DNA of 64,000 nt from assembly GCA_047495785.1 (NCBI GenBank), contig JBLDXI010000029.1:2356001-2420000 (forward strand), in the 5' to 3' direction. The notes beneath the pieces are model-generated. The model had not been told where the DNA came from and searched no databases. It saw only the letters and a program-made list of their open reading frames with translations. Shown one piece after another: positions 26,491 to 55,118 of the stretch. How positions within the stretch are numbered: position 1 is the first letter of the stretch; the number at the start of each line of letters is the position of its first letter. The DNA comes from Lepidodermella squamata (Eukaryota > Animalia > Gastrotricha). The position numbers were made by a program, and so were the translations under genes.

Positions 26491-29400
26491 TCACGACTGC
26501 TGCTTGGTGCGAGGTACGAGAACCACCGAAAAATCGCCTTCGCTCAACGGAATCGAAATTCGAGCTGCATGCAATATCTAAAATATCGAAACTCAAAATT
26601 AAATAATCAAATTCTTTCAATTTAAACGTACTCTTTGCTCGGCCTCGTAGACTGCGATCATCTCGCGCGTTGTAGCCATCGCCGCATCGCCCGACACGGC
26701 CTGTTTCACATCGACCTTGACTTCATTGCTAGCAATACTACCCTGAGCCTGAGTAACTGGCTTCGTGCTATTATCGCCGCTTATATCGATGACCGGCGCA
26801 ACTGTCGTAGTTTTCGAATCAATCATTTTAGAAACATCGATGCCGAAAAACAGAATGTGGTCGATCGTAACTTCAAAAGGCCATGGCAGAGTCGGAGGGC
26901 GTGGGATATTCGGTTGAAGGTGCATGTGAGGCACCCGGACCGGCTGAAAGGTCACGCGACCTTCAAGGATATAATACTGCGACAGAACGAAGCTCACGTG
27001 AATCGAAGAAGTGTCTAGAAAAATAATTTAAAATTTTTTAAATTCAACACAGGGCGAAAATTGCTCACCATTCACTCCGCCCTCCCAAAAGAAAGATCCC
27101 CGAGCTAAAGGTCGACCTTTGACCCTTCGATGTTCGCACTCTTCAGTGACCAGCAAACTGATATGCATCGCGCCATAATCGACCAAATTCGACTTCCGGC
27201 CCCTCGAATTCGACGGAATCGAGATGTTAAATGTAGCTAAAGCATTTGTATCGATCGGAACAATAGCCCCGCTTCTCATGTAGATAAAATTCTCCGGCGC
27301 TTCACTCGCCACTGATTCAATGGGGCGGAAAATTCTGGCGTCATTTTCAGCGCCTCGACACATGTCGTATTCGGTATTTGAGCGTAAATGAAGCCATTTG
27401 AATCGCGAGACTAATTGAACCCTGGCCTGGGGGTTGACCGCCAATGGCTGGGTGACGATGGGTGCAACAAGGAGCCCCTCACCCAACAGGAAGGTTTGAT
27501 ACTCGTCGATCAACGCAGGATCGGCTGGTGATAGGTGGAACAACGGCTTCCAAAACGGCAATCCATTTTGCGAAAATTCGTATAGTTGAGTATACGTATA
27601 AGGGAGTAGTAATTTTCGGAAATTTAACGAGTGATTAAAAGCTCGGGTGAAAGATGACTCATTAAGCAGGGCGTGATGGCGATGCCGGCCAGTTGGGTTG
27701 TAGTCGTAGCGGATCATCGGCAAGAATGCGGCCAGGTGAGCCCAGGCTGTGCATAATTCCAGACTGCCGGGCCCGTCTTCACCGCAAATCCAGTCGCCTA
27801 CGACTGGGATTCCGAACCAGTTGAATTCGAGTATGGACATGACGCTGGATTTTAGTGATAGCCAGGTTGCGGCTGTTTGGCCTAACCAATGGCCGCCGAT
27901 TTTGCCGTAGCCTGGGAAGGTTGATGATGACATGAATGGAGAGGGGCTTGAGCGTTTCATCAGAGCGTGACGGGCTTGGCCAAGTAATTGAGTCCAGGCT
28001 CTAAAAAATTAACAAGAGTGCAATTTTGGAATCCAGCTCTAAATTTTCCAAGAATTTTGGTTTTCGATTTTTTCGAATTTGAATTTGAATTTCGATTTTA
28101 TATCTAATACCTAGTAACCGATCGATCTCTGCTTACGAGTTCTTCAGCAATTTAGTTTGAGGATCCAACATATCGATTTTCGGTATCGATTTTGAATGAT
28201 TTTTTGATGTCACCAGTCATGGAAGTAAAAACTGAACTTTACAATTTTCACTTTTTTAATATAGGGCAGATCGAGTGCTAAAATACTCAAATTTAGAGCT
28301 GGAACCTCAATTTTAGGCCCAAAAATTTTCCTCTAAATTTTCCTTGAAAAAGAGCTTAAAATTTATGATTTGAAAATTCCAAATTTAATTTGAAAACTAA
28401 ATAAAAAATCCTATTTTATAGGGTAAATTGAGAACTTACTGGCCCATAGACTTGGACATGAGCAGGCCGTAGGCATTATGAATGTCGACGTGAGGCAAAG
28501 AACAGTCGCGATGCAGGGCCATGGCACAAATTGTTGCAAAGCTCAAGGTAGAAGAGGACGTATTTTGAAAATATCCGGCTCCTAAACATTGAAATATTCG
28601 AAAAAATTGAATTAAAAAATTCAAGGCGTCATTCAAACTTGTCGTGTATGGCATCTCGTAGCTTAGGCAATTTGAAGCAGTCAAATTTTTGTCTCGACTA
28701 TTGACATAGGGCTGATTTTCCAGCTGAGAAAAAATCCAAAACATTAATGTTCGTATAATTTCTGAAATTTCGAAATTACCAGTTCCAGGCTGTTGAATTC
28801 GGTCACACGAAATTTCGGGGTCAAAAAGTTGCGCATAACATTGACCGCCTCTTTGGCTAACGGGTCCCAGAAAGCAAACGCTAGTTGAGGACCGCCGAAC
28901 TCGTTGTTCCGGTAAATGTGAAAAGTTTGCTTGACGACATCAGATGGAATAATGCAAGATAGCTGATTGATAGCATTTTCGACAGCTCGACCCATCAGAA
29001 CTTCATTTGGAACCACTCTAGTCAGGGTGCTCACGTGTGGTAACTGAAAATTATTTAAAAAAATTATTTTTGAATTTTCAATGTCGAAAGTTTTGCGAAC
29101 CAAGCTGTATGTAAATTTTTTCATCGCATTTGAAGGCTTTAGGCGCCGCCATTTCGCAACAATTTCGTCGAAGCCGGTTGAGTGATGCTCGTATCGGTGC
29201 TTTTGGTCCTGTTGTTTTATGCATAGAGTTGTCCAAGGAATTCGCGCCGCTTCCCACCCGGTAACAGTCGTGTTCAAATCGGTGAATGAGTCGATGCCAG
29301 ATACGCAGACATGAAGGTCAAGGAACCATCTTGGAGGCAAAGCTGGCCTTCCGATGAGCTTAGAAAAATAAAAAAATCATTCAAACAAAATCGAAATTAA

Positions 29401-32400
29401 AATTTCAAATTGTATCGTCAATGTTCGCCAACTTTAAGAAAAATTATCATTTTGACCTCATATAAACACATTTTTTATTTCCAGGTTGGACAAAATTATT
29501 GTTCCCACAAGTCACCAAACCGCACCTTTCTCGACTTGTTATGCAGCGTAATAACGCAGGGTGTGGCACGGGTTATCTGTTGCACCTTGCGGTGGTGGAA
29601 CAGGCTGTTGCACTAATCTAGCAATCTGCCATATTTGTTTGTTAATTTCTTAACCTTATATTTTGACTTCAAGTTGCATCTATGGCAAACTGATCTTTAG
29701 TTTACCTAATTCTGATGAGTGGGTCAACCTTTTCCGTATGAGGATCGTATGAAGAAAGGTGAGGAAACAGGCCGTGATAATTGAAGTTGTAGAAATTTCA
29801 TAGATTATTTGAAAAAGTCTCATTGCTTAAATTCCTGATTTTTCTTTCCCATAACTTTCAGTGTGTTTTAAATAGTTGAATTTTTGTAAAAATGCCAGTT
29901 AAATCTGAGACTGAGAAGCCATGGGTCAATGCTGACCAAGTAGCAACTGACCACGCGAAAATGATGAACGAGTTTGTGGAAACTTTTGGGCCGCTTCGCA
30001 ACAACGACGTAGGCCTGCCTCTCGCCCTGTTTCACGGCCAGTGGCTACCAGCATTCTTGCCAATCTACTGGCCTCAAATCTACAACTTTCCTGTCAAGCC
30101 TGACGACGTTACTGTGCTGAGTTTCCCGAAAAGCGGAACCCATTGGCTGCACTACATGGTTTATCTGATCACAACAGGAAATTTCGATAGCGCACCGCCG
30201 TCTGATGAGCGAGAACTTCTCGAATTTCCACGGCCGAACGCGCAGGCGGTACTGGAGCGCCTGGCCGCTAAACCTGGGCCGAAGGTGTTGAGCTCGCATT
30301 TGTCTGCTGATCTGTTGCCGAAGAACATTTTCAACGGTAAAGTAATTTACATCTACCGCAACGCAAAGGATGCCTGCGTATCGTTCTACCATCATCTTCG
30401 GGCGATGAGCAATCCTAACTGGCCGTTTAACCTCACTTTCGACGAATTTGCGAGAACTTTCATCGAGGGTAAATTCATGTTTGGACCCTATCCTTCCCAT
30501 GTCGTTGGCTACGAGAAGCTGAAACAGGATGGCAAGGATATTTTGCTTCTTCGATACGAAGATATGAAACAGGTTTGGTAATAGAAAAATATTAGAATTA
30601 AAATGTCCACCTTAATAAATCAGGATCACACTGGGTCAATTCGTAAAATTGCGGCTTTTCTCGGCAAGGATTTGGACGACGCGACGGTTGAGAAGATTCG
30701 CGAGAAGACAACCTTTGCTAGCATGCGCAACAACGATGGCTACAATTGGTCCGAGAGGAAGAAGAGCGGCATGTTTGCGAAAGATGCCGATTTTATTCGC
30801 AAGGGTGAAATAGGCGACTGGCGCAATCACTTCAACGACCCGAAACTGCTGGCAGATTTCGAGGAGTTTATCAAACAAAAATTACCAGCTGACCTTGTCA
30901 TACCTTGCGAATAATCCTAAAATTCTGACTCAAATTACTTTTGTTGTCAATATTATAAATTACGATTATTTCGTTTCACGCACATGGGAATTAAAACAAT
31001 CAAAAATGATGATAAAATCCGATTTTGGCGGTGAATTTCATTTTGGTCGAAATAAAAAGCTGAATAATGAGAAATCAATTATGAGAAGACTTTTATGAAG
31101 AAATCAACACTGTGAAATACTGGATCGAATTAATTCCGAATTAATGGAGGGCTTAAACCATTGGTACTCGGCTACATATTTTTTAAATTATTCCAAAGTG
31201 AGATTTTAAATTATTTTAAATTTAAATTTTAAATTTTAATAAATAATCATACCTGAGTGTACTGTTGAATAACATTGTCTGGTGTTGGGCCAGTAAAAAT
31301 GTACATATCAATGACCCCAGAAATGCCTCGCCAGGCAATTTGCGGGTATGGATTAATCGTGATTTCTGAAAAAATTGACTAATAAAGGGAAAAAATTGAA
31401 ATTTGCCAAAAATCGAACCTGAAGGTGCGGCATTGTAGAAAAGGATTCCATGCGCGAGACCATTCGGGTCAATAACCATAATAAAAGGATGAGCGCCGTA
31501 AAGATTCGATTCCGTCTGTATTTATAAAAAAAATCAGCATTCAGCTTGACAAAAATTCCGAAAATTTTACCATCCAATCAGCGGGCTGATACCGCGAGAA
31601 AATCGTCCAAGTTTGCGCCCTGGTTTTGTCGCTATTCCGCCGGAAAGTTTTATGTCGATGCTCGCCAATTCCGTAAATTCGCGAATCTCTCGCCGCAAGC
31701 CCCGTTATCTGCATGAAATCACTCGTAAAAACCAACCCGCCAACATCTGCATCCCACAATACAGGCGAATTTTGGTAGGTCGTCGCGTCCGGGTCCGGCG
31801 ATCTTGCTACTCGAAACGCGAACGGATTCGCTGTGACCACATCCACCTTATACTTCGTTTTAATCTCAACATCCGAGGCGAATAATTCAGAATTTAACAG
31901 GCCCTCCCGAGTAAAATCGTAAGAAGGCTGGCCGGTATTTGTCGCCGGGGTTTGGTCCTTATCCGGCTTGACGTTAATTCGAACAATCGAGTCTGACAGC
32001 TCGGTAACTGCGAGGCTAATGCCGTCGATCATAGTCCCGAAAACGCCGGCTGGAGTCAAGCGGCGTAGGATGTACTCCGTAGTTCGGCGGGGCGAGTCGA
32101 CAGTTCGAACATCGACCTGTCGATAGCCCAGCGTAGCGGGTGGCATGAAGCAAATCGGCATGCTAGGGTTGGTCCGCGGTCGTTTATAGACACAGCCCCG
32201 TTTTTCGCACGCCAACTTGCTAATATGCCACGTTTCGTCCGGCGATCCGTCCTGTTCCGGGTAGCAATTAACCCGGCGCAGTTCCTCCCGAATCACCGCT
32301 GGGTCGTCCGTGACAGGTGGTTCGATGTAAGTTGAGTTATCGGCGTTTTTGTAGAATAAAAAGTAGTAGCCGGTCGCGCAGGTCGCGGCGAGTGTCAGCG

Positions 32401-32590
32401 CGACTCCGATTGCGGTCAGGGTGACTGCGATGGTGACGGAGCGGCGGTGTTCCGCTTTTCGCCGCCGATCTTCAGCCAAGATTAGGGCCATCTGCGGGTC
32501 GACGCCGAGCAACGGCGGCAACAGGTTGGAATCGCCGTCGAGCGAGTCCATTTGAATGCTCTGGCTGTGTTTTCTAGACAATTTCTTCAT
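26491..32590 (-). CDS. GH31 alpha-glucosidase-like type II membrane protein, copy A (trefoil + GH31 domains; catalytic residues substituted)
   Basis: N-terminal TM (VTIAVTLTAIGVALTLAATCATGYYFLFY); trefoil RVNCYPE...CEKRGC; IYGIGEH; HGILFYN; IHNAYG; SSTFPGYGKIGGHWLG; LLPYTYT; FLLGEGLLVAPI; multi-exon, last exon 26577-26491. Confidence 0.88.
29892..30914 (+). CDS. Cytosolic sulfotransferase (SULT1-like), two exons (29892-30572, 30624-30914), nested antisense in a GH31 intron
   Basis: 5'-PSB loop SFPKSGTHW, SH catalytic His, 3'-PB YIYRNAKDACVSFY, C-terminal RKGEIGDWRNHF; 51-nt GT-AG intron. Confidence 0.93.
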
Positions 32591-34203: not shown

Positions 34204-37200
34204 TTAAGCTGGACGCATATTTGTGGGCGGAGGGAGTTGATTAGAGGCGATCAAATCCTGTGAAAAAAATGTGTTAAAATTACATGAAAAATCTAAAAAA
34301 GTCCTTCTTACCTTGATCAAAGGCGTTGCTTGGGAGTTGACCAGCTCCAGTTGCAAGTCGCTGAAACCCATGCGACCAGACAGACGATATTGCACTGTCC
34401 AGTCTGGGCAATAATGCAGGATGCGCTTCAATCGTCCGGCTTGTTGGGGCGTTAAACCAGGGTTATTCGCCTGAGCTTGTTGCGTATTATACCGCTCCGC
34501 CAAATTCACAATTTCCTAACAAAATAGACAGTTATCAGTTATTCCGATAATAAATCATTATCAAGCTTGATTTTGCTGAATAATCTCAGAATTTGACCAA
34601 TTTTCCTCAATTAATTTTCTAATTTTCTCAAGTTTACCCAAGTATCAAGTATGTTAGTCCAACTCAAAAACAATTGAATCCAGTACTTCATTTAAGAATT
34701 TGATTAAGAAAAAATCCCGCGATTTCTGAAGTCAATGCCGTAAATCGACATGAGTTCTAGAATTCGAAATGACCAATCAGCGCCACGGGTAACTTCGCCG
34801 AATCCATTCAAAGCCGAGCCTGTTGATCTTACTCAGCTTATTCAAGCTGCGCCTCGACTAGCCTCGACCCCAGCAACCCCAACAACCTAAGCCGATTATT
34901 TAATTCTGCGGCTCGCAGAATTTTCGGCGTTTCCATCGTGGGTAGCCACTTTTATTTTTCGCAAGCTCTTTCGCAAGAAGAATTCTTATTCTGGGTCTCT
35001 GGGACGAGTACAACGAGCCAGGTAGTTTGGCGAGGAAAGGCAATCAGGCGATGAATGGCCTAGTACCACTCCTACCAGTTCATCAGATCGGCACTGCTTA
35101 CCAACAAATAAAGCTTTCATGCCGATTTACAAAATATTTTTGTCTATTTTAAATCCATTGGTACGTACACGGTCAGCCCTACCGAATTTCGTCGAGGGCT
35201 GGAATAGTTGGATAAATCGTACAGCTCGTGTCGTCCACCTTAACATTTGGTAGTTTTAAACTATCCGGCAATCCCCCGGGATGCCAAGTCTCAAATCTTT
35301 GGCTATGGAGATCAGATGCGGTTTGGCGCGTTTGGAAATTCTGCCTGCCAAGCAGTCGCCAATGCCGTAAAAGACAATTGGTACGAAATTTCCAACAGCG
35401 TCCTCTCACCGCAAAGCCGGAATACCGATTGGGGAATATTGTGTACCAATTGTCGGTTACTGCCGCAACGGTGGCAAAGGCTATCGAAGATATTCCCGTT
35501 GTTGCTGAGTCACCTGTTCGCAAAATTCAGCTATTTTGCAGACAAAAATCTACGCTGAAGGCCCGGATGTCGATGCGGAGACGCTCGGCAGTTATGCTCG
35601 GAAAGCCCGCAATTTTGCACGGAACTTTTCATTATAAATAAAATTTGATTCTCAATTTATATAAACATAGACTTTGCCCCGAAATTTCTACAAAATTGAG
35701 CAAGTAATCCGAAATATCCACAGAAAAAACCCGAAAAAACTCCTAAATATAGTGTGCGCGTCAGGCCCATTCAAAAATTAATGAAAAATTTTACTTTTTC
35801 CATTTTTTTCAATTTTTCACAAGTTTTCAAATACCCTATCGAAGCGCCTTACCTCGAAAAATCGATCAGTCAGCGGGTAGAAGGCCATCAAATCGTGAAA
35901 ATAACGCGAATTTTTCGACTGCATAACCACCTGCCGAAACACAGCCTCAGCCCAATAGTCCACCTTATACGCCTCCGCAATAATCAACGACTCGAACGCA
36001 ACAGACTGCTGAATAATCATATCCCTGATGTGATCCGGGTTCGTCCGGCCGATGATCACCAACGAACTCGGCTGGCGTTGAGACGTCGATAGAGTTTGCC
36101 CATCACCCTGTTGTTGCTGTTGCTGCTGGGCCGCAGCGGCCGCGGCTGCTGTAGAAACAGTGCCTTCGGACAAAAATCGTAATTGCAACGCCAGTAATCT
36201 AGCCTGCCTAATGCAAGAATCGGCCTGATTCGGACACTCAGCCCTGGCAAAACCCTTCGCGGCATCGACCAATTTTTGAGCCAAAAGCGGCAGAGAACTA
36301 CTCGCCTCGGTCGCCCAGGAATTTAGATCAGTCGTATGGGCTAATCTACCCAAATCAGCGACCTGTGACGTCGCGGAGTCATGCAACAACTGGGCGACCT
36401 CTCGCTCCATGCCGTATTGAAGGCAAACGTGGCGGTACAAATCAGGCTGGCCGCTGGTTTGGCCAGACAGCGGCCTTAAAAACTCGAGTAGACTCGTTCG
36501 AAATTGCGCCTCGCAATCAGGCCGTGGTCGCAACTGAAAAACTAGCGGTAACTTCCCGTTTCGGTACAAAATATCGAGAATATACGACATTTCACCGTAA
36601 CGACCAATGTTATGCAGCATTTTGACCAGTAGTTGTAAATGCGAGTCTGAGGTACTGTTCTCGAGCTCTCGGCTCAAAGTTCGAGCTAGATGAAGAGCCG
36701 ACGCGATTCCTTCGACGTTATTAGTCAACGCAAACGCGTTATGGGCATGGACTAGGATATCAACAGCGGCTGATAATTCGTGAAAACCACGGCCGGGTCC
36801 GTTCAGAAGTTGCTGAACCCCCTGGACCAGCTGATTGCCGAGAATCGTTTGATCTGGGCAGAGCTGGAATAACCGATTTGCCATATCGTCCAACCCGACC
36901 GGTCGATCGATGGCCGCGGTTGATACAGCGTCGAAATCTGTGGTCCAATAACGTAGCACGTGTTGGCAGACTAGAACTGCGTAGTCTTCCGGGGCTAGTA
37001 AATCGCCGGATTTCGCCAATTTTCCAATCAAATCCAGCGCGTTGAAGGTAGCTTTTCTCAGCAGCAACTCGCATAGGGTCAAAGCTGGTAGGGTTTCGGC
37101 CTGGGCGTAAGGTATCGAGCATTCGACGGAAATTGAGTAGTAGAGCCGTAGACGGTCGATATGGGCTCGCATTGTTTGGCTTTCAGCAGCCATTCGTTCC

Positions 37201-40200
37201 ATGGCTTGAGCCACTGTGGCGCAGGCCGAGTAGGGCGGGGGTAGTTCGGATACGCCCATTCGGCCCCAAACCAAATCGGTGCACAGTTTGACGATCAGCA
37301 AGTCTAAAGAACAAAACAAATAGGTTTTTAGAATATTCTACTAATTCAGTTACAATGCCAATTTCCAATTTTGTAATTTACCGATGAAGAAATAATTCAA
37401 AGAATAAATAATAATTTCCGTCAGGCTTGGAATTGATCCTAGCTTTTGCCTGATAAATTAGTCTATCAGAATTCATATTGTCAAGTTTCAATAATTCCTA
37501 CAGCATGTTCATTTATCTATAGGAATTGAAATTGAATCGCGTCGAATAGCATTAGCATTATAAGAACTACGAATATTCTCGCATGTCTTTGCTGTTGTTC
37601 ACATCAGAACGTGAAGGCCTAACCAAAAAGTCCCCCAGCTTAGGGTGGAATTGTGGCTGACGGCTGACCCGACTAATTTTGACTAATATTTATGTACATT
37701 TGTTATATATTTTATGTATATATCGATTTTCTGATTTGTTACTCTGATTCTTGTTTTCTTCAATTTTCCGGGATAACCCTTTGGCACCGTTCGGTCAGCA
37801 CGCTCCCTTTTTCTCTTCTTAGAAAGCGCTAGGAGAGAACAAGACTGGGTCGAAACAAAAATGGCGTCAATGGCTGGCAGGGCGGAAATTTTTGTCGCCC
37901 GAAATGCTCAATACGAGTGTTCAAATCGAGCATTCATTTTTCATTCATTCGGAATCATTTTCAACGGCTGCATCTATTCTACCTTCATCATCATCGCGGC
38001 ATACGTCTTCGTAGCATTCATGGAAAGCCGTGGATTCTTAGACTCAAGGGGAATCGACGGGCGTAGAACGGAACGATTTTTCAGGCTGGCTATAGAAACT
38101 ATTTCTTATATTTAACCTCCTTCCTCACGGGAGCTTCGGGGCTTTTAATAGGCAACGGCTCAGCTTTGTAGCTTTGCAACACAGTGGCTGGGACGAAAAC
38201 TGGCGCAGCTGGGGTCAGAAAATCCGGTCGGCTTTTCACGAGTTGGCACAAGTCAACCTTTTTGTTATCCGAATTTGTGTATTGAATTGTAGCGAAGACG
38301 CCAGATTTAGCGGCCGAAATGACTTTGACATCGACCGATGCGTCGAAAATGCCCTCTCGCTCCAACGTTTCCGCCGTTTCTGGGAATCCAAGTTTTATGT
38401 CCTGCGCCGCCGTAATAGGCCGTTAGCAGTTGTTCCGATTAGCAGATTGAACTTCGGGTTCTTCTAAACTTTTAGAGGCTAACGTCAGACGATATTTCAG
38501 TTTCGCTTTCAGGTTTTGATGAGACTATTGCGTCATTTATGCAGTTCAAATTAAAACCGAAATTTATTCCTAGAGAAAACGTTAGATGAAAGCAAGAAGG
38601 TTTGACCGATCACTTCGTTAGCGGGGCGTTGTTAAAGTCATATCGGCAGCAATCCAATCGAACTCAACATCATCACAGCACAGAGTGACTCGGTGGCGAT
38701 TTTCTCTCAAACGTTGGTGAGTTTTTAGCTGATTTTTCAGTAAGACGTCGCGACCCAAGGTGATGACGCATCCGTCAGATCCAAGAAGTAATTAAGCGGA
38801 TCTAGAGGCTTGAACCACTGGTCGTAGTTTTTTCCAACAAAAAACCGTGATAAAAAATTAGAATATTTAAACCATAAGGTTATTATTGATTTTTCCTGTA
38901 AATTTTGAGAATTTTTTCAATTTCTATCTGAAATTTGGCAATCTAATCTCAATATAGTGTGTTTGCCTTGAACGATACAAAGTGAGCCTGTCTCAATGTA
39001 CACTCAATTAGTGTCATTAGTGTCGATTTTGACCTTCGCAATCGTTCGACCAACAGCGCTGTTTTCGGCCGATTTCTTATTTTCAACTTGATATCGACAT
39101 CCCACCGATTTGACCGAAAGTTTTGTTCTAGTTCGTCCGCAACATCGACAATCTCGTCTTTGCGGATCAATTTCACCGCGACTTCGCTGTTTTCATCCCG
39201 CTGTGGCACCAAACTGAGGGTAACATCCCGCTCGTGAACTGCCTCTCGGAACGCCTCGGCGGCTTCTTGCGGCCATTCAGCGCCTACATATGATTGAATG
39301 ATCGATAAGACAGTAGCTTCGAATCCAATCGATACTGCGCAGTCTATCAGTCCAACCATATCGGATTTTTCATTTAGTTCTAACAATCGGCCGATGGGTA
39401 TTCAATAAAAGCCCGGAATTTAGCCTGATGTACATCGTGGAGCCAGATCGATCCAATGCAGCGAAAAGGTCGCTCATGAGCCAGTATAAGGTCAACTCTT
39501 TCAAACGTATCAACTTCCCTGTGTCAGAAGAGCTATTTACGCAGTGGATGAAACAGTCAGAACTTCTGTGTAACGCCCACAAATCTCATCTCCGACACCC
39601 TGTTCCTAATTGTGCAAAGTACTGCTATACCTTTTCAGTGTGTCTTCGATTGCTTTATCGAAATCTGAAGCCTGAAAAATTTGCGGATCTCTTGTTCGCC
39701 GCTAAAATCTCGTCGAACCATAGGGGCCGAGATTTGAAGAAGGAAATTAAGAGGGCCAACAAACACGACTGCGGCTTACAATGGTGCCACCGCCTCACGC
39801 GCTTCAACGTTGTGTCTTTTATTTAGGTTGGCCCCGTCTGGGATGACCAGGGTCGTCCTGGACCCATGCTATCCGCTTCCTACCCCGCCGGATGCGACTA
39901 TGATTGCGATGCAACGGTTGGAACAGGTACGGCAGCAAGCGGTGGGGAATTGCAACCCCGACAACCTCAGCAAGCTCAGCAACTTCAACCCCATTGGGCC
40001 ATTGGGCTCGAAAAAATTATCAAAATCAAAATGTCAATTTTTATCGAGCCAAATTAATTGAGAGAAGTAATGCATTTCGAATTTGACCCAAAGGAATCCT
40101 CTTCGTTCGTACATCTGAACGAAAACGCCCGCGCTGTGCAGTAATGTTGATTTTATTACTATCAAATCAGCTTGCCGACGGGCGATGAAGCCGAAACTGA

Positions 40201-43200: not shown

Positions 43201-45164
43201 AGATAATTCGCACTCTGAAAGCCGAATAGTTTCGTAACATCGAAAACCATATTCGACCTCAACAACGTGTACAACAACCGAGAATCTTCCAATTTCACAT
43301 CACCCTTGTCGTGGAAAAGAGACGTCAAAAAGCCGGAATAACGAGCTAAATTAGCCGGTTGTTCAATTTCGAAATCAACGACGGGTTTTTGCGTTAGTTG
43401 CCGGATAAAATGACCGTATAGCTGCTCGGTTATATTAAGGTGGCCCTCGGCGAATCGAACGCATTCTTCTACGAAATTTTCGTCGAGAACGCGGCCATTC
43501 CCGTCGTCTCCAATCAAATATTGGCGTGATTTTTCGAAAAATTGCGCCCAAATCGGTTTCTCTGCCAACTGATCGACATATCTCGCAAATTTCAGCGAAT
43601 CATTGTGGCAAAGTGATAGAAAAACGTTGACATAACCGCGTTCACAGCAAATTTTCGCGATTTCCGCCAGCAACCGCTCGTTTTGCGCATCAGTGTAACG
43701 AATTGTTAAATGCTCATTAGTCGGCGATCGAGAGCATGCAACCAGCCGAGCAGCTTCACTAAGACTCAGCGAATCAAACACATTTTCGATTTGACTTTTC
43801 AACTCAGGCGACGACATATCAACAGCTAGCAACGCCTTTTCTCGCACAAAAGCCGGGACTTGCGCGTCAGTCTTCATCAGAAATTCGATTAAGCTGGGTT
43901 GCTGCGTTTTTGCCAATTGTAGAATTTTGTGAAATTCAGCTTTCAATGTCATTAGGTCTATATCATCGCTGGTTGGTATTTCAGACGGGGTCATGGTAGT
44001 CATGCCTTTCAAAGCATGACACGCCGCTTGAATTCGATGCCTTTCAACCGGGCTCAGCTGCTTAATCCAGGCGAAAGGGAACGGAATTGGCTCGCAGGTA
44101 TGTTGGGCCAACTGAAATTTGCCATCACTAGTTTGCTTGCGATGATAATATTTTAGAACAGGATCAAGACTTGCCGGTGAAAATTGGCCATTTTGCTCGG
44201 AAAAGATGTCAACCATACCCTTCAAAACACACGGGCAGCTGTTGAAACAACTCGACAATGTCGCGAAAACGGCAACAGCATCAACTGGGGGTAGATGACC
44301 TATTTCGCCGAGCAGGCAAATCGCATTTTCCGAAATGTGCCAATCGTATGTTTGATCAGCTATTGACGAAAAGTCCGAAACTGGGTCTCGACCAGCGTTG
44401 GTCAAAACTTCTGCGGCGGCTAGTGATTTTCCGTGGCGGAGTAGCTCGCACGACGACGGGAGGACACTACTTTCATATAACGAGCTGATATTAGCTGATT
44501 TCAGCGAAAATTCATGCTCAACAGGTTTTGACAACGAATTAGCCACAGCTGATTGAAAAAGCGGTAATTGATTAGAATTTAGCGCCGAGACAACTAGGAC
44601 TGGTTGAATCGGGTTAGAACCAGCATGGTCGACCTGTTCCTCCCAATCCTCGTACTGGCGGGGTAGGATTTTTTCAGCCTCGCGATTTTTCAGCTGTTTC
44701 AAATGGTCCTTCTTATGCAACTGGTCTCTCATAGCTGATAGAAACATAGCAAATCGGTTCAAAGGCTGGCATAGCTCGGCTTTAGCTGATTCGCTGGTTT
44801 GGGCGGATTGATGGCGAAATAATTGGCTGATCATTTCCTCACAAAACGGTATAGCCACCCCGTAGAAACTGGTAGTGGCATCAGGAATTCGATCGCCATC
44901 ATCATCTTCGTCCGATTTTTCGCTACTTTCAACAGTTTCCAGTGCACTGAAAGAGGCGGCCAAGTATTTTCCCAATAAATCATCATCAGCCCGAGTTATA
45001 GCTTGAGCAGCACCTTGAAATATATTTTTCTCAGAAATGTTCTTCCTTAAATATTTTTTCGTAAAAATACCATTGGTCAACTGAGCTAGCACGAAAGACG
45101 TCACATATTGCTGATTCAAGCCAACGGAACATCGCAAAATCTCTAAAAGCGCATCCGTGTCCAT
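34204..45164 (-). CDS. SPG11: Spatacsin (exons 45164-45071, 45013-40640, 37303-35853, 34515-34312, 34257-34204)
   Basis: ~2100-aa helical protein; C-terminal motifs ILVHAHNAFALTNNVEGIA and LLVKMLHNIGRYGEMSYILDIL, plus FESLIIAEAY..DYWAEAVF, resemble the spatacsin C-terminal domain; splice phases consistent. Confidence 0.85.
35200..35470 (+). pseudogene. Decayed fragment of an uncharacterised protein, antisense in an SPG11 intron
   Basis: Protein-like segments GSFKLSGNP and GDQMRFGAFGNSACQAVANAVKDNWY in different frames. Confidence 0.3.
37870..39386 (-). pseudogene. Degenerate multi-Tudor (extended Tudor/SN-like) gene fragments in an SPG11 intron
   Basis: Two segments fit the eTudor C-terminal pattern: WPQEAAEAFREAVHERDVTLSLV...VAVKL...VDVADEL and FPETAETLEREGIFDASVDVKVIS...VFATI...VDL; separated by stops and frameshifts. 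Confidence 0.45.
39392..39600 (+). pseudogene. BACK-domain-like fragment in an SPG11 intron
   Basis: RWVFNKSPE...KRINFPVSEELF...SELLCNAHKSHL resembles the RW..VRFPL..LL.EA..YHL end of BACK domains. Confidence 0.3.
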
Positions 45165-45224
45165 TCTAAAAAAATTCAAAAACAATTAAGGAGGGTATTT
45201 TATATTCGCATTTTTATTTTTATT
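45165..45224 (-). promoter_or_regulatory. DHX8 poly(A) signal followed by a splice acceptor directly before the SPG11 ATG (candidate trans-splice site)
   Basis: Minus strand AATAAA (45224-45219, 45218-45213) ... ttgtttttgaatttttttAG|aATG. Confidence 0.55.
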
Positions 45225-45307: not shown

Positions 45308-48300
45308 TCAGAAGGTGACCTTCGTGCGGAATTTCTTGCCAATAACGCGGGATAGACGCCACGAATTCGGCTCTTCGTACTTGTTGACGAGCGGCTCGAT
45401 TTTCTGGCCCTTTTTCTGCTTCGACAACTTCGTAGAATCGCCATGTTTAAAGAACTTCGGCGCAAATTCGACCAGCCAATGCGGATCGATGGCCGTGCAT
45501 TCACGCATATACTCCTTCGAAGTCATAACCAGCTCGTGGTAGACAACCCAGTCAGGTTGGTGTTGATAAAGCGCTGAAGACGGGTGGATATAGACCAGCT
45601 GAGCGTCGACTAAGGTTCGATACCCTTCTTGCGGGTCTTTTTTAGCCGCGTGACGGAAAAACCCAGATAAAATTGCTTTTTGAGCCCGGGCAGTCGCTTT
45701 CCCACAGCTAACCACGTCCAATTTGTGCCTGTCCATTATACCCAACATTTGCTTACGAATATCTTGAGCTCGCCGCAAAGTTCGAGCCTGGACAAAGTTC
45801 TCGAAACACCACGGATTTGAAAATTTATTATTTTTCCAGGCGTTGTAGACCGCAAGAAGGGTTAAATGATCCCCCTCAGACTGGTGAAACTTCGCCTTTC
45901 GCTGATCGGCAAGTTCAGCTTTTTCTTTAGGCCGGTAGAAAATGTTTTGAACCGACAGCAGCGAGACAATTGTCAAAATTTCGTCCGAACAGCCGAGTTG
46001 AACCGACATAATGAGCATTTTCGATAACATAGGTTCCAGCGGAAATTCAGCCATTCTTCGACCTAACCGGGTTAGAAGGCCTTCATCGTCCAGGGCAGAT
46101 AACGCGTGAAGTTGCTCCATCGCAGCGACAAGGGTTTGCACCTGGGGTGCGTCCATGAAGTCAAACGATAGCAAATCGTTGATACCAAGCGCTTTTAGCG
46201 ACAGAACAGTACCCGCTAAATTGGTACGTTGAATTTCGGGAACGGCTGATGGTAACATCTCATCACGATACGCGCGTTCTGTGTAGAGACGGTAGCATTT
46301 ACCAGGTCCGGTTCGACCGGCTCGACCCGCTCGCTGTTTCGCCTGGGCTTGAGAAATCGGAGTAACGACGAGTTGATCCATACCTGATTTCGGGTTATAG
46401 ACTTTTTGTTTGACAAAACCCGGGTCGACCACGTAGTAAATTCCATCGATGGTCAGACTGGTTTCGGCAATGTTAGTCGCAATGATAACTTTACGACTGC
46501 CAGGCGGTGCCGGGTCGAAAATTCGAGATTGCATTTCTGAGGGCAGAGCACCGTAAATTGGTAGAATAATAAGTTCAGGCACGTCGGTTCCAAGGGCTTT
46601 CATTCGATCGAACAAAATTTCACAGGCGGTGTCGATTTCTTCTTGACCAGTTAGAAAGACGAGAATATCACCAGGCGGTTCGGTCAGATGAATCTGCATA
46701 ACTGTAATCAGCGATGCGTCCAAATAATCGGTTTCGGGCTCCTTTGTATACAGGATTTCGACAGGGAATGATCGTCCTAAATAAATTAGAAATTATTAAA
46801 TAAAAATAATTTAAATATAAAATATAAAAAAAATTGAAAAATCCTCCTTAATATTTCTCTCAATTTTTCTTACCTGGAATAGTGAAAATCGGACTTCCGA
46901 AGAAGTAAGTACTGAATTTAACGGCATCAAGAGTCGCAGAAGTGATAATCAGCTTCAAATCCGGCCTCCGCTTAATCGTAGCTTTCATCAGACCAAATAA
47001 CACGTCAGTATGAATAGTTCGCTCGTGAGCCTCGTCCAAAATGATGAAAGAGTACGCCTTCAAATCTGGATCGACCAGGCACTCTCGCAGTAACATACCG
47101 TCAGTCATGTACTTGATGACAGTATCAGCTGATGTGCAGTCCTCGAAACGAATGGTATACCCGACTTCTTGGCCTAATCGGCATCCGAATTCTTCAGCGA
47201 CTCGTTTAGCGACTGACATCGCAGCGACACGACGAGGCTGGGTGCAGCCGATTTTACCCTTGGCGGTATAGCCAGCCTCAGCCAAATATTGCGTGGTTTG
47301 CGTTGTTTTACCACTGCCGGTCTCTCCAATTACAATCAAAATTTGGTTATCATTCACAGCTTTTATCAACTCGTCCTTCAGTTTTGCGATTGGAAGGCCC
47401 TGTCGCTGCTCCAAAATCGATCGCTTCTCCTTTTTGAACAAATTAGCTCGACTACCGGAGGCCATGTACTTTTTCCATTCTGGTACGTCGAGTAGCCCAC
47501 CGGATTTACCGACGGTTAAAGGTCTGTCCTGAGCCCCCATTCCTAGGGTGGGATCAGCGCCTCCTGAAGAAAATGGGTCTGTAAAGGTTTTCCCCATAGG
47601 AGCTGGGGCGGCAGGGAGCGCGGATTTCTGAGACTCCTGTTCCTTCATAATTCGCTCCTGTTGCTTAATCTCACGGCGTTCTTTCTGCAAAGCCGCTTGC
47701 ATCATTGAAGACTGGGCCAAGGAACCGTCGGGATTTTTCACAATTTTCACAGGCTCCAGGTCGAGAAGTGACTGACGGCCGTAGCCGCGGAGAAAAGCCG
47801 GTTCTTCCTCGACCAGTTCGATTTCAACGTCTTCATCCGATTCTTCAGCCTCCTTGAAAATAGCGCCTGTCTCATCGTCGAAATCAGGAAGTTCGTTCAT
47901 AGATATACCACCGCCGGCTAACATTTGCTTCAATTCAAAACGCTCGGGGCTGGATAAGCGTTTACAGCGACCTCGTTCCATGTCGCTAGAGGCGATATTA
48001 GTCGAGCCGGTAACAATGTCAAGCCGAGACACGCCTGATCTACCGCCTTCACCCGATTCTCCGGGTCTTTCCGGATTTCGACCAGTTGCTTCGGATTCGG
48101 TGAGACCGCCTAGACCAGCGCGAAGTCGTTCGGTCCTTTCCGGGTTTTCGTCTTTACCGGTTTCTTGATTCACGTCTTTCATCGATAGACCCGTCCGATT
48201 TCCGGTAAATGACAGACATTTTACGAACACTTTTTGACCTCGTTTCACGAAATCTCCGACATTATTAACTCGACCCTCGCGCCGTAGTTCGGAAATGTGG

Positions 48301-49210
48301 CATAAACCTTCGTACGACTTGACTAAACCCTCAAGGCGGATGAAACAGCCGAACTGCATAATACTAGAGATAGTTCCTTCGTAAACATCACCAACGATTG
48401 GCTGGAGAGGTTTCCGGGGTTTTGACGATAGGTCGCCAGCTTTTCGGTGAGACTCGCGGCTCGGTGGAGAAGGAGACCTGCGACGCCGATGCCTATCGCG
48501 AGACCTGCTCCGTGACCTTGATCGACTACGTGAACGAGATCGGCTTCTAGACCGACGTCTATCCCTGTCTCGCTTGTGATGGCGGCGATCGTCACGGTCG
48601 TCACGGCGATCTCTGTCACGATCTCGGCGGTCTGAGTCCTTGGAAGTAGGCTGGGGAGGGGGCTGCTTAGCCTGCTGTAGCATAGCCTCCAGGTCATCTA
48701 ACATGCTGGAAACAACGGCTTGATCAGAGCCAGGTTCTGCCGGTTCTTTAGGAGCACTATCAGTCTTCAATTCAGAATCCAACATGGTCTAAAAACAATT
48801 GAAAATTGAAATCCAGCAATCGCATGAAAAGAAAAATTTTGACATACCCGAACTTTAGGATCATCCGGTATGCAAAGCCCAGGAAATAACTGCTTCTTCA
48901 ACTCGCGATCATCGACGTTTTCTTTAGACGTGCCTCCTCCAGAATCCCCACTTGGAGCACTGGGCTGCGGTTTCGCCTTTTTCGGCTTCATTTTCTGGAT
49001 CAGACGTAGCAAATTCGCTACAAAAGAGTCAGAAAACTCTGCCCCTGACTCGTTCAGTGCTTTTCTGAAGGCGGTGAAGGTTGGGTGCTCTTCAGCCATT
49101 GCAATGATAAATTCGGCAAGGTCTTTGTCATTTAGACCCAAATGGTTGTCCAACTCGGTGCATATTTTTGATACCAGCGATAAATATTCTAATTGCTCTA
49201 CAGTGTCCAT
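45308..49210 (-). CDS. DHX8: ATP-dependent RNA helicase DHX8/Prp22 (exons 49210-48848, 48788-46874, 46776-45308)
   Basis: [20 protein letters not shown]-terminus, RS repeat, S1 domain, [42 protein letters not shown]. Confidence 0.97.
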
Positions 49211-49329
49211 TTTATATTGACCTAAAGAAAGATGAAATACAATGTTAACAGATTGATGAGGTCAAAATCGTGGAAGAAAATCAAAAATCACGGTGCAAGC
49301 ATTCTGTCATCATCACATGAGCTTTTCAT

Positions 49330-50361
49330 TCAAATGCCAAGACGCCAGCGCCGGTATTTATGCAACAGTAAGCCAACCCAGGAATAAACAGTTTCGCCTC
49401 CAAATTTGAACAAGGCCAACTGAATTTCGTGTGGACCCCAGCCGGTTAATTCAATCAAAGGAAAAGATTGAGAAAATACATCTGATTTCAACGCTTTGTC
49501 TAGGGCATTAAATGCCGAAGCTGTAAAACGATCAACCGAAGGACATGCAGCGGAATGGCTAGTGTACCAATAAGCTGTCATGTCTGTTAACAAATACGAT
49601 GGCTTCAACAGTGTCACGCAAAGCTTTCTCTCGGTGTAGAGGTGTTTAGCCTCAAGCGCCAAACACTTTGAAAGAAAATCCATGAATTGCTTTGATGCTG
49701 AGTATATGCCCTGGAGAGGCAGAGGGTAGGCAGCAGCAACAGAGCCGATATTGATAATGAGAAGTTTGCAATTGCTCTTAGACTGCTTTTTATAATTTAG
49801 AATGTTATAAAGAATCCAGGCAGGAGCAAAACAATTGACGATAGCAATGCGGCGCAAGAGATCTGGATCCGCTTCAGTAATGTATAGCGGAGTATCAAAT
49901 ATCTGACCAGCATTATTAACGACTACGGCAATTTCCAAAGACCTCAGTGAATCGAATACACCAACATTGGTACTCAAGTCACTCTCCAGATCAGCGCCAA
50001 TAGTTGCAATTTTGCAAGAAGGGTGAATTGTCTTGATCTCTCTGCCTAAATCCTCTAACTTATCCAGACTCCGCCCAATTAAAACGAGGGAGAAACCCAA
50101 GTCAGCAAGCCGCATGGTAACGGCTTTCCCGAGACCACGAGTGGGCCCTGTAACAACCGCATATCGTGTAAATCTTTCACCAGCAAGCTCTTTCCAAGAG
50201 TCGACTGTTGATGGTAACATGTACCGATGAATCAGGCGGGCAAAAGAAAGCAAAACGTTAGCAGTCCACTTGGCAACAAATGCGCCGCCAATAACACGCA
50301 AACAGATTGTGGTTGCATCACCTTGAAACATCGATTGTGCGGTGCGAATGAAGTGAGACAT
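49330..50361 (-). CDS. Short-chain dehydrogenase/reductase, HSD17B12 / very-long-chain 3-oxoacyl-CoA reductase-like, single exon
   Basis: AVVTGPTRGLG, VLIGRSLDKL, VVVNNAG, INIGS, catalytic YSASK; hydrophobic N-terminus. Confidence 0.9.
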   Translation of the reverse strand: MSHFIRTAQSMFQGDATTICLRVIGGAFVAKWTANVLLSFARLIHRYMLPSTVDSWKELAGERFTRYAVVTGPTRGLGKAVTMRLADLGFSLVLIGRSLDKLEDLGREIKTIHPSCKIATIGADLESDLSTNVGVFDSLRSLEIAVVVNNAGQIFDTPLYITEADPDLLRRIAIVNCFAPAWILYNILNYKKQSKSNCKLLIINIGSVAAAYPLPLQGIYSASKQFMDFLSKCLALEAKHLYTERKLCVTLLKPSYLLTDMTAYWYTSHSAACPSVDRFTASAFNALDKALKSDVFSQSFPLIELTGWGPHEIQLALFKFGGETVYSWVGLLLHKYRRWRLGI

Positions 50362-51219: not shown

Positions 51220-54200
51220 TTAGGATTCAAAAGGCGTACTTGTCTGCAGATGGGACACTGGTTTGTTCAATGTTATTGTAAAATCTCCGTCAGAAACAGT
51301 GAGAGAAAGGTTTTGAGCAACCAGAACCTAAACAATTAAATGTTAGCAATTCGAATTCTCATTTATGCGGCTTTCTTCAAGTTACCTGTCTCCTCCAATC
51401 AAAGTAAGCGTTATGGTGCTTGGTGAGTGTCAGTTTATGATTACCAGCGACTGTTTGCTTAATAGTTAGTTTTACAACGCTGTTATCCATTGAAGGGGTG
51501 GTTGAAGCCCTAAATGGAGTTGTGGTCGTTGAAGACGTCGTAGATTCAGTAGTTGTCGTGGTCGTTGTCGTAGCCTCGGTGGTCGTCGGCCCAGCACCAA
51601 AGGCGAAATCATGAAGGCCTAAATCTTGGTCAAGAATAATGCTGTGACGAGGATTCACTGCTGAGACCGGCGGAGTCTTCGGGAAGAAAACGGATACGTT
51701 AATTCCATAGAATAAAATGTTGTCGATAATGATTTCGAATTCCCACGGGGAGCCGCCCACTGTTGATGCGTCACTTTCTGCAGGGCGTCGAACTGGATTG
51801 AAGTTCATTTTCGCATCTAAAGTGTACTCTTTGCTGAGTTCCATTTTCGCAGAAACAGTAGCAAAATCTAAAACGCAATTCGCAAGTTAATAAAAGCTTG
51901 TTCAGTGGCTATCATGATTACCATTAACACCCCCTTCCCAATAGAGCGAGCCTTGAGCCAGCCCGGTGAATTTTGTTCCTTCTTCGTAAATTCGATTCAA
52001 ACAGCCACATGACACTAGAAGAGAGATGTGCATTGGCTTTGAAACGGTAACGTTGGCATTGGAAGGCCATTCAGGTGGTGCATTCAAGGTTTCAGGTTCA
52101 GTTTCGGAAATCGGATTGAATGGGTCGATAATAGATAATATTTCCGACATGACCGGTACAATAGAGCCGCCTTTCAGGTAGACGTAATTCTCTGGTCCTT
52201 CAACATCGATGTGTCCGGGGCGATGTTTCTTCGTGCGCCTTCTCATAATCTAAAAATACAAGCAATAAATAGATATCGAAGAGCGAAGTAAGAACTAGTA
52301 ATACCTTGGCATCAATTTTATGATCACGGGGAAGTAGAGGTTCGCCGTTTCTGGAGCAGTAATTGAATTCTTGGCTCGTTCTGAGGTGGAACCAGCGATA
52401 ACTGGGCACCAACTGAACCGGTTGGTAATCACCAGCTGATTGAGTGAGAACCGGAGAAACCAACATGCCGTCACCTAGCATGAATGTATGATATTCATCA
52501 GCTAGGTGTCTATCAGCAGGGAACAAATGAAACAGCGGTTTCCAGACAGGATAACCTTTGTTGAAAGCATCGTAAAACGTAGCGAACATGTATGGGAAAA
52601 TGTGAGCGCGGAAAGTTAGCGAGCGATGCAAGGTACTCAAAAATGTTGGCTCGTTGAGCAATGCCATGAAACGATGTCGGTTGTGTGGGTTGTAGTCCAA
52701 GCGAACGGTGGGATAGAACGCAGCCAACGTTGCCCAATGAGTACACATTGCAATACTTCCTGGTCCTTCCTCGCCGCAAATCGTGTCACCAGTCAAAGGT
52801 ACACCGAACCAGTTCATCTCAAGAATCGACATGACGCTTGATTGGAGCGATTGCCAACTTGCAAATGTTCGGCCGACCCAGTGACCAGTCACACGGCCGG
52901 ATCCTGGGAAGGTCGAAGAAGCCATTATTGGCAGTTTATAGCGGCGGCTCGAGATTCCTGCCTGCTGGTCACTTTCGTTTACAACTTTCAGCCAAGCACT
53001 AAAATGATAACGTTTGAGACCCCATGTTATTATCCACTATCCACAATGTCCTTACTCTGATACAGCGTTGGCGAAAAAATAGCCGTATGCATTGTGAACG
53101 TCCAAATGGCGAACTGAGCAGTTGCGATGAAGAGCCGACATGCAAACGGTTCCTTTGCTTAGCGTAGCTGTCGTGTAGTTGTAGTAGGGCTGTTCGTTCT
53201 CGTTCTTGCGCATTGTGCGCAAGAATCCAGCCTCTGAATGAGGAAATGCGTCATGAAAATATCAGTCATTTTACAAATTTACTTGTTAGATATTTTCTTG
53301 GAAGCTCGTAACAGTCTGATACTGTCACATTGTCCTCAGAAAAATCGATGTATGGCTGATTGTCGTGCAATTCAAGAGCATCGAACGGGATCAAGTCACG
53401 TTTTTTCTGAATCTCATTCATGAGCAATTTTCCTATGTCTCCGTCCATCGGATCCCAAACATGATAATTTTGCGTAGATTCCTATTCGGAAATACGTAGG
53501 AAAATGATGGACAAAAAGCAAATATTTTTCTCACTTGTTTGTGCTTGGTAATGGTGACAAGCTCGTCTTGGCAAGATTTTGCTCTCACAGCTCTGCCCAC
53601 AAAGGCTTTAACACTCGATTTAGAAGTTTCCCTGGCCAGAGCTGACATGGTGACTGAGATCTTCTTTGAACCTGCGATTTCCGCCAGCTCAGGTTTAAGC
53701 AGAGATTCTGAGTTGCTTCTCAGGCAGAAAACGCTCCAAGGCAGGCCTTTAGCGTCGAAGTGGCGCCTCATCTCAGCAAGATCTGACATGTTTTTGGCTC
53801 CTTGAAAGCAAACATGCATTCCGAGGAACCACCTAGGTGGAAGCAATGGTCGCCCCACTACCTGAGTGTATTGAGCGATAACGTTATCCGGCGTGGGACC
53901 AGTGAACACAAAGATGTCAGGTATGCCTCCGATGGCACGCCATACCAAGGCTGGATAAGGAGTGACAGAAATTTCTGCTGGAGCTGAGTTGTAGAACAAA
54001 ATGCCGTGAGCATTGCCATGTGAATCAATGATTAGCACGAATGGATGAGCACCATAGAGATTCGAGTCCAGCTGAAAATTTCAAGATTAGATAAATCATA
54101 TAGAATTACGACCGTACCATCCAATCTGGAGGCTGATTTCGGGCGAACATTGCCCATGTCCCGGCGATGATGCCGCGACGAAACTTTGTATGGCGATGCT

Positions 54201-55118
54201 CGCCGATGCCATAAACTCGTGCATTTTTCGGTAGAGCTGTTGTAACTTGCATGAAGGTTGGACTGATGATCAAACCTCCAAGCTCTGAGCTCCATCTATT
54301 AAAAAATGCAATCTCTAGACCCCTAAAATAATTGCCAAAGCTTACAAAGGTGCAGAGCCATGGACTATTCCGTTTTTCGATCGCATAACTCTAACAGAGA
54401 AAGGCCAATCTTTAACCTCTTCGATCTTGTAAGTCAGCAGAGGTATAGGATTTCCTTCTTCGCTGTAGGTTACAGGAACACCTGGATGAATCCTCGCTCT
54501 CACGAAACCTTCGTCAGACAGTTCGTAGCCTGGGGTGAAAGCTGGAATAGGTTTCGTTGGCTGATAGAAAAGCCGTGATTTTTCCGTAATTCGAACTCGG
54601 AATATGTAACTGGACATGTCGTAAAATGACATTGTTACTTCGTAAGATGAATTCGTGAAAAATACGCTGGATCCAAGCCGTCGTAAAGTGAATTCCTTTT
54701 TACCCTGTTCGTCTCGCCTGAAGTCAACGCGTCGATAGACAAATTTACCGGGTGACATGTAGCAAGGTGGTGCGTAGGGATTGTTCATTTTCCAGTACTC
54801 GCAACCTCGTTGTTTACACATGTGGTCCGATATGAACCAAGGGTCTGTCAGAGAGCCGTCCTGTTCCGGGTAGCAATTGATTCTTCGCATCTCGCCATCG
54901 GTGAGCGGCGGGAATTTAGGCGCCTGGGGCGTCGCCGGGGTGACTGGTTTTTGCGCGACGTTCTTCGCAATGTTGACTATCACGATGACAACGATGAGAA
55001 CCACGCCGGTTATGCTGCCGATGATGGCCATGACGACACGCCTCTTCTTCTTCTTTTCCGCCTTGATGCGCTGCAGTCGAGCAGCCTCCTTCAAGGCGGA
55101 AGCACCGGCGCGGCGCAT
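51220..55118 (-). CDS. GH31 alpha-glucosidase-like type II membrane protein, copy B (catalytic residues substituted; Thr-rich insert)
   Basis: KKKKRR + TM VVMAIIGSITGVVLIVVIVIV; trefoil RINCYPE...CKQRGC; HGILFYNS; YTQVVGRPLLPPRW; SSTFPGSGRVTGHWVG; FMLGDGMLVSPV; last exon 51327-51220 with AATAAA downstream; start codon uncertain. Confidence 0.88.

Follow-up and report, generated by a model that had tools for sequence, protein, structure and literature searches.

A pair of ancient, predicted membrane-anchored GH31 paralogues with dismantled active sites, probably kept for a non-enzymatic role

Two genes encoding proteins of the GH31 glycosidase family lie between positions 26491 and 55118 of the DNA analysed here, a stretch of 64,000 nucleotides (nt) that we refer to as the window. 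We call them copy A and copy B, and use OA and OB for their orthologues in a second species. Both are encoded on the minus strand, and their coordinates are given in Table 1 together with those of the other features. The window has the appearance of a compact animal genome: its G+C content is 42%, introns measure about 50-60 nt and acceptors take the form TTTCAG or TTTTAG. The two gene models were assembled from the raw sequence and then refined by comparison with relatives. The spliced frames, of 1126 codons in A and 1158 in B, contain no stops, and every intron has canonical GT-AG borders. Each copy is thus a predicted multi-exon gene with an intact frame, as a first-pass annotation of this DNA had reported. 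The exon order and exon ends of copy A match those of OA on contig L003, and copy B has a full-length orthologue, OB, on contig L006. A, OA, B and OB have three intron positions in common, phases included, and two further ones are common to three of the four. The last exon of each copy is small and carries the conserved motif [IV]L.A....[IL]..S[ED]GDF; the version in copy A, ILHAARISIPLSEGDFSVVLV, is common to copy B and OB, and the small last exon of copy B (51327-51220) is conserved in sequence with copy A and both orthologues. Within the copy A model, positions 29100-29044 of the minus strand form a 57-nt in-frame GT..AG stretch, whose donor (GTTCGC) is weak and whose acceptor is TTTTCAG. 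It would encode 19 residues that are absent in OA, B and OB, and the stretch is very probably an additional in-frame intron, possibly retained in some transcripts.

To characterise the encoded proteins, homology searches against Pfam and the PDB were run exon by exon, and the joined proteins were used for frame checks, alignments and trees. The GH31 barrel (PF01055) was found above the cut-off in both copies (A, 78.9 bits, E = 6e-22; B, 69.0 bits, E = 6e-19), as was the proximal C-terminal beta-sandwich (PF21365; 33.8 bits in A and 39.3 bits in B). The galactose-mutarotase-like N sandwich (PF13802) was matched weakly by exon 1 of A (17.5 bits; cut-off 27), and the N-terminal product of OB has a weak precomputed match to the same domain; this region of A and B aligns with canonical GH31 around GIGEHRH / NLYGAHPF. 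The best PDB matches of both copies were MGAM, GAA, SI and sugar-beet alpha-glucosidase, with E values for MGAM, GAA and SI of 1e-25 to 1e-58. Given these Pfam and PDB match scores, we consider the GH31 homology of A and B to be real and not a chance resemblance.

The order of domains is the same in the two proteins: a basic N-terminal tail, a single predicted membrane-spanning segment, a putative trefoil and GH31 N domain, and the barrel and C domains of GH31. The tail has 49 residues ending in RRRKAEHRR in copy A and 24 residues ending in KAEKKKKRR in copy B. In A the segment that follows is the only N-terminal hydrophobic one, and in B it is the sole hydrophobic segment of the protein. Applied as a test for a type II signal anchor, hydropathy gave maxima of 2.05-3.13 at residues 25-85, with 8-9 Lys and Arg in the tail. 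Since the basic cluster lies N-terminal of the hydrophobic segment, the predicted orientation is type II, and the sequences of both copies are consistent with a type II anchored protein whose body is lumenal or extracellular. Hydropathy and the basic tail therefore agree with the type II segment first described for the two copies. The remainder of each protein carries 7-9 N-X-S/T sequons and 14-15 Cys. The trefoil cysteines, said to be kept in both copies, are kept in part: four of the six are present, while C1 and C5, which are normally disulfide-paired, are absent in A, OA, B and OB in a MAFFT alignment. The trefoil of copy B scored 16.7 bits with PF00088, under the cut-off of 21. Copy B also contains a mucin-like insert, and OB has a still longer Thr run at the same place (about 13150-13300 of contig L006); none is present in A or OA. 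This insert lies far from the membrane anchor, in contrast to the usual stalk position.

We then compared the active-site residues, numbered as in full-length GAA, in alignments with GAA and MGAM chains and, using MAFFT, with 10 and 24 canonical GH31 sequences. All the motifs that the first-pass annotation quoted for both copies were found, on the minus strand, and the alignments to GAA, MGAM and the 24 canonical sequences bore out its claim that the catalytic machinery is lost in both. Every catalytic or -1-subsite column is changed in A, OA, B and OB (Table 1), and the Trp481 loop is deleted in the family. No substitute carboxylate stands at the nucleophile, where the residue is Leu or His, or at the acid/base position, where it is Gln or Arg. 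Elsewhere, 26 of the 60 columns that are invariant in canonical GH31 are retained in all four proteins, mostly scaffold Gly, Pro, Cys, Trp and His, and Trp613 (of HW.G) and Arg672 are retained as well. ICGE.GPGS and DYNP are present in both copies, and the intron that splits the nucleophile block of copy A is found at the same position in OA. The replacement of WxDxDYM held with regard to its Asp, which is lost, but the register first given for it was off by four: the W of the family aligns with the L of IPLD, and two MAFFT alignments place a Cys of A, OA, B and OB at the canonical Trp of W.D.DYM. From these alignments we infer that A and B cannot hydrolyse alpha-glucosides by the GH31 mechanism. 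The old pocket probably no longer binds glucose either, because the residues that hold glucose are gone too.

The residues that took the place of the lost ones are not a random assortment. Ser600 and Asp674 are found in all four proteins, positions 516 and 519 are acidic in all four, and Lys or Arg occupies position 404 in three of the four. Other replacements are fixed by paralogue: A and OA have Gln at 616 and Leu at 518, where B and OB have Arg and His. As the replacements are themselves conserved, the remodelled, charged pocket appears to be still under constraint. Might the proteins then still be enzymes, with substitute carboxylates forming a new catalytic pair or supporting a new activity on another substrate? 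The first-pass annotation had named substitute carboxylates as something that would refute its reading. The conserved Glu or Asp at Met519, Asp at His674 and Glu or Asp at Trp516 speak for such an activity. Nevertheless, we regard it as quite improbable, as both catalytic Asp are lost along with the substrate-positioning Arg600, Asp404 and His674, and the Gln of A and the Arg of B at the acid/base position would require different chemistries in the two paralogues. The characterised GH31 hydrolases, transglycosylases and lyases all use the Asp of WIDMNE and the Asp of HW.GD (family knowledge; PMC8063059).

The same pocket bears on another possibility, that the proteins are lectin-type receptors. 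A glycan would then still be bound by the dead GH31 domain, by the trefoil or by outer subsites, and each protein would serve as a glycan sensor in the membrane or as an adhesion molecule, much as chitinase-like lectins do. The retention of the fold and scaffold, including Trp613 and Arg672, the partly retained trefoil domain and the conserved rather than random replacements in the pocket all fit a lectin. However, known pseudo-glycosidase lectins lose the catalytic residue and keep the residues that hold the sugar. Here Asp404, Arg600, His674, Trp516, Phe649 and Asp645 are changed and the Trp481 loop is deleted, so that the -1 subsite for glucose is gone, and the abundance of Asp, Glu, Lys and Arg in the new pocket sets it apart from typical sugar sites. 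We therefore consider a lectin unlikely, though it is the alternative to which we give the most credence.

Relatives of the two copies are few. A HMMER search with the 310-residue exon of A against 1.84 billion representative proteins returned one close match, a 198-residue fragment; its other matches were canonical GH31 proteins with 31-43% identity. Word-index searches with exon profiles added one further close protein. Both close proteins are encoded on contigs of one animal species, present in four ENA metagenome assemblies, and from these contigs we obtained OA (contig L003, 9 exons, 1142 residues, 56% identical to A) and OB (contig L006, 5 exons, 1160 residues, 60% identical to B). Both show catalytic losses equivalent to those of A and B, and both have the C-terminal motif. 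The second-best profile match, a dead GH31 from a JGI metagenome (P0037), is without the family motifs and was set aside, and the look-alikes returned from the ESM Atlas were generic GH31 fragments only. The order of genes is partly shared by the two species. Spatacsin precedes both A and OA, and past spatacsin we found no conserved synteny upstream of copy A in the second species. An eEF1A/HBS1-like GTPase and an SLC17/sialin-type MFS transporter come before B and OB in both species.

Between the species and between the paralogues, synonymous divergence (dS) was saturated or undefined, and the ratio of non-synonymous to synonymous divergence (dN/dS) was unusable. Selection was tested instead by polymorphism among metagenome haplotypes of the second species. 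OA haplotypes differ by 11 synonymous and no non-synonymous changes, with indels in introns only, and OB haplotypes by five synonymous and one non-synonymous change. Pooled, 16 of 17 changes are synonymous (P = 8e-10 for 16 or more under neutrality, with 23% synonymous sites). These results support strong purifying selection on both genes and mark them as selected pseudo-enzymes, not decaying copies. It had been foreseen that the two might turn out to be plain pseudogenes. The corresponding rival takes them for GH31 copies decaying without function, or for annotation artefacts. A foreign gene does lie inside one intron of copy A, and both genes are known from genomic sequence alone. Against this stand a stop-free frame of about 3.4 kb in each copy, spread over 9-10 exons with canonical splice sites, the conserved intron positions, the retention of both copies in species distant enough to saturate synonymous sites, and the 16:1 ratio of synonymous to non-synonymous polymorphisms in the orthologues. 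We give decay almost no weight.

The orthologues also date the loss of catalysis. In the tree, A pairs with OA and B with OB, with supports of 100/100 and 100/95, and the duplication that gave rise to A and B is therefore older than the split of the species, both copies having been retained since. Arg600 to Ser, His674 to Asp, Glu521 to Gln and the canonical Trp to Cys are common to both paralogues and both orthologues. These common substitutions, read with the tree, support the earlier proposal that catalysis was lost before the duplication.

Taken together, we favour, with a probability of about 0.6, the reading that A and B are ancient paralogues, type II GH31 pseudo-enzymes of the GAA/MGAM/SI clade, whose ectodomain serves as a binding scaffold. 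A non-enzymatic role of the two proteins is what their sequences suggest. By analogy with other dead glycosidases, an ectodomain with a complete GH31 fold and a dismantled active site would act as a scaffold for another membrane protein or for a secreted protein, and the role might be that of a partner, a chaperone or a co-receptor. A and B would have diverged toward different partners. The predicted order of domains in the two copies is that of GAA, MGAM and SI, namely a putative trefoil, a putative N beta-sandwich, a (beta/alpha)8 barrel and proximal and distal C domains. A type II membrane topology is likewise found in MGAM and SI. They differ from these enzymes in the replacement of Asp404, Asp518, Arg600, Asp616 and His674, the deleted Trp481 loop, four instead of six trefoil Cys, the extra C-terminal stretch and, in B, the mucin-like insert.

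The SLC3 heavy chains (rBAT/SLC3A1 and 4F2hc/SLC3A2), to which the copies had been likened from the start, are type II glycoproteins with a glycosidase-fold ectodomain, as A and B would be. They are partners of transporters, and 4F2hc has no catalytic activity. Their ectodomain is GH13-like, whereas that of A and B is GH31. SLC3 heavy chains are defined by a juxtamembrane Cys that forms a disulfide with the light chain. We looked for a conserved juxtamembrane Cys in the alignment of A, OA, B and OB and did not find one: in B and OB, the stretch from the membrane segment to the trefoil lacks Cys altogether, and the Cys of A and OA are inside the hydrophobic segment and do not align. The likeness to SLC3 therefore stands as a functional analogy only. 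The Klotho family (alpha- and beta-Klotho, whose dead GH1 domains act as FGF co-receptors) and the chitinase-like lectins (dead GH18) are, like A and B, glycosidase folds that were selected after catalysis was lost, and were reused for binding; their folds and topologies are other than those of A and B. Chitinase-like lectins keep their sugar-binding cleft, in contrast to the dismantled -1 subsite of A and B.

Several points weigh against the scaffold. The step from a dead fold to a partner protein is taken by analogy with the SLC3 heavy chains and Klotho, and the view of a pocket that is remodelled yet constrained is drawn from alignment. The conserved carboxylates at 516, 519 and 674 would leave a small chance of new chemistry. 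Selection on copy B in the window species is deduced from its intact frame and its orthologue OB. A and B are represented here by genomic DNA, and the public protein collections searched held no protein of the window genome.

A and B appear to belong to a wider set of proteins. Many of the GH31 domains among the 150 best database matches have non-canonical catalytic signatures, and five of these degenerate proteins have a single GH31 domain preceded by an N-terminal anchor and a trefoil. One, from the millipede Chamberlinius hualienensis (P0114, GAB6020583.1), is filed as 'hypothetical protein', and the other four (P0136, P0095, P0108 and P0189) are encoded on Logan contigs, each about 3 kb long and probably a transcript. 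Like the A/B family, the five have Cys at the canonical Trp and have lost Arg600, His674 and Glu521. Unlike it, they retain six trefoil Cys, some of them keep Asp518 and/or Asp616 (DDLDY, SDMNS), and they are without the ICGE.GPGS, DYNP and LENQP motifs and the C-terminal extension. In trees that also included 27 other sequences, of which nearly all have the canonical catalytic residues, the A/B family groups with these five with a support of 97 (FastTree) and 98/98 (IQ-TREE, LG+G4), a grouping that long-branch attraction may affect, as the stem of the family measures about 1.3 substitutions per site.

A literature search on inactive GH31 proteins returned only a sandfly paper (da Costa-Latge et al., 2021; PMC8063059), which reports that catalytic residues are missing from the single gene named 'lysosomal alpha-glucosidase' in each of several sandflies and mosquitoes (LLOJ006451, PPAI002935, AAEL017226, AGAP001534 and CPIJ001201) and lists no such gene for Drosophila. 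In a comparison made by eye only, the sandfly sequence in its supplement (LPFDTHCIRE, ICGD) has derived states as in A and B, namely a Cys in place of the canonical Trp, with Asp404 replaced by a basic residue and Phe649 by an acidic one; unlike the A/B family, the sandfly protein has lost HW.G too. The pair was first taken for an undescribed family. It is indeed new and strongly derived, but the group of anchored degenerate GH31 proteins and the published precedent mean that A and B are new additions to a class of dead GAA-like membrane proteins that has received hardly any notice.

A bolder proposal would join A and B, the dead and anchored GH31 proteins of other arthropods and those of mosquitoes and sandflies in one old clade of pseudo-enzymes. 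Their charged pocket would be a site for binding proteins, and they would be obligatory partners of membrane transporters, as chaperones or as subunits resembling heavy chains, B being paired with the SLC17/sialin-type transporter directly upstream of it in both species. We think this a long shot. That B sits next to the sialin-type transporter in both species hints at a functional link but is not evidence of one.

Public data contain many dead GH31 units, most of which have drawn no comment. In two-domain MGAM/SI-like proteins of about 1800 residues (P0025, P0030, P0016, P0018, P0008 and P0015), catalytic residues are missing from the N-terminal GH31 unit, with signatures that include DTRFF, DTTSF, DRTNH and DNREL, and the C-terminal unit is mostly canonical. 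A protein of the tick Ornithodoros turicata (P0148, XP_064482599.1) is annotated 'lysosomal alpha-glucosidase-like' and has a non-canonical signature (DTSEH); its glucosidase name is probably misleading.

The interval also holds four unrelated genes, for a nested sulfotransferase, spatacsin, a DEAH/S1 helicase and an SDR. Intron 3 of copy A has no counterpart in OA, and this intron and the sulfotransferase nested in it are therefore specific to the lineage of the window. The spatacsin, helicase and SDR genes are all on the minus strand, with short gaps between them. A small open reading frame between spatacsin and copy A is 53% identical between the species and has no Pfam match; it could be either a small gene of its own or the final exon of spatacsin. 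Scanning the window for Rfam families and tRNAs gave no matches. For a glyoxylate-reductase-like neighbouring gene the best named matches were in insects, at only about 40% identity, which hints faintly at an affinity with arthropods.

Table 1. Features of the two GH31 copies, their active-site replacements (GAA numbering) and neighbouring genes. Positions refer to the window unless a contig of the second species is named.
Feature	Position	Strand	Details
Copy A gene	26491..32590	-	10 exons; ATG at 32590, TGA ending at 26491; product 1126 residues
Copy A exons 1-5	32590-31571, 31515-31419, 31365-31253, 29358-29101, 29043-28780	-	
Copy A exons 6-10	28723-28639, 28581-28440, 28000-27069, 27014-26632, 26577-26491	-	
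Copy A membrane-spanning segment	32363..32437	-	residues 52-76; Kyte-Doolittle 19-residue mean 2.05
Copy A trefoil (P-type) domain	32147..32272	-	4 of 6 canonical Cys; PF00088 23.6 bits, cut-off 21
Copy A PWTTLCIKQ	29212..29238	-	counterpart of IP.D..W.D.DYM; Cys at canonical Trp, Lys at Asp404
Copy A nucleophile block	28709..28797	-	FNSLEL (28780-28797) and LENQP (28709-28723), split by GT-AG intron 28779-28724
Copy A SSSTF...HWLGQT	27874..27930	-	HWLGQT 27874-27891; HMMER alignments to MGAM, sugar-beet alpha-glucosidase and GAA
Copy A GDWICGEDGPGS ... RYDYNP	27694..27798	-	RYDY(NP) 27694-27711; Asp645 to Trp, Phe649 to Glu, His674 to Asp, Arg672 kept
Copy A last small exon, conserved C-terminal motif ILHAARISIPLSEGDFSVVLV	26515..26577	-	exon 86% identical to last exon of OA
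Copy B gene	51220..55118	-	9 exons; ATG at 55118, stop at 51220; product 1158 residues
Copy B exons 1-5	55118-54346, 54295-54118, 54071-53535, 53481-53283, 53233-53056	-	
Copy B exons 6-9	52998-52305, 52249-51922, 51867-51386, 51327-51220	-	
Copy B membrane-spanning segment	54966..55037	-	residues 28-51; Kyte-Doolittle mean 3.02
Copy B PWSVFCLRS	53715..53741	-	Cys at canonical Trp, Arg at Asp404
Copy B nucleophile block FDALELHDNQP	53353..53385	-	Asp518 to His, Trp516 to Glu, Met519 to Asp, Glu521 to Gln
Copy B ASSTF...HWVGRT	52866..52922	-	HWVGRT 52866-52883; aligned to GAA and MGAM chains
Copy B GDTICGEEGPGS ... RLDYNP	52686..52790	-	RLDY(NP) 52686-52703; Phe649 to Glu, His674 to Asp
Copy B Thr-rich mucin-like insert	51491..51583	-	distal C-terminal domain; 25 Ser+Thr in 40 residues
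Asp404 (-1 subsite)			A Lys, OA Lys, B Arg, OB Gly
Trp516 (pocket)			A Glu, OA Asp, B Glu, OB Asp
Asp518 (nucleophile)			A Leu, OA Leu, B His, OB His
Met519 (pocket)			A Glu, OA Glu, B Asp, OB Asp
Glu521 (pocket)			Gln in A, OA, B and OB
Arg600 (-1 subsite)			Ser in A, OA, B and OB
Asp616 (acid/base)			A Gln, OA Gln, B Arg, OB Arg
Asp645 (pocket)			A Trp, OA Trp, B Thr, OB Trp
Phe649 (pocket)			A Glu, OA Gly, B Glu, OB Glu
His674 (-1 subsite)			Asp in A, OA, B and OB
Sulfotransferase	29892-30914	+	two exons (PF00685, two pieces); inside 1.9-kb intron 3 of copy A
Small conserved open reading frame	34204-34509; L005 16046-16285	- (window)	79-101 residues; between spatacsin and copy A
Spatacsin	35817-45185	-	between copies A and B
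DEAH-box helicase with S1 domain	45308-49210	-	DHX8/PRP22-like; between copies A and B
SDR	49330-50361	-	between copies A and B
GTPase and SLC17-type MFS neighbours of B/OB	56308-63955; L006 5732-9508	- (window); + (L006)	65-83% identity

Glycosidase folds that are dead but selected have repeatedly proved to be important binding proteins, as in the SLC3 heavy chains, Klotho and the chitinase-like lectins. A and B have lost all catalytic and sugar-holding residues, yet two paralogues are kept in two distant species, and OA and OB show almost no amino-acid polymorphism despite the lost catalysis. Together with the millipede protein and, probably, the mosquito and sandfly proteins, their sequences point to a widespread membrane protein family of arthropod type, one that would currently be mis-annotated as 'lysosomal alpha-glucosidase(-like)'. 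Studies of genomes or digestion should leave these genes out of their glucosidase counts, and the tractable mosquito genes may offer a route to the function of these proteins.

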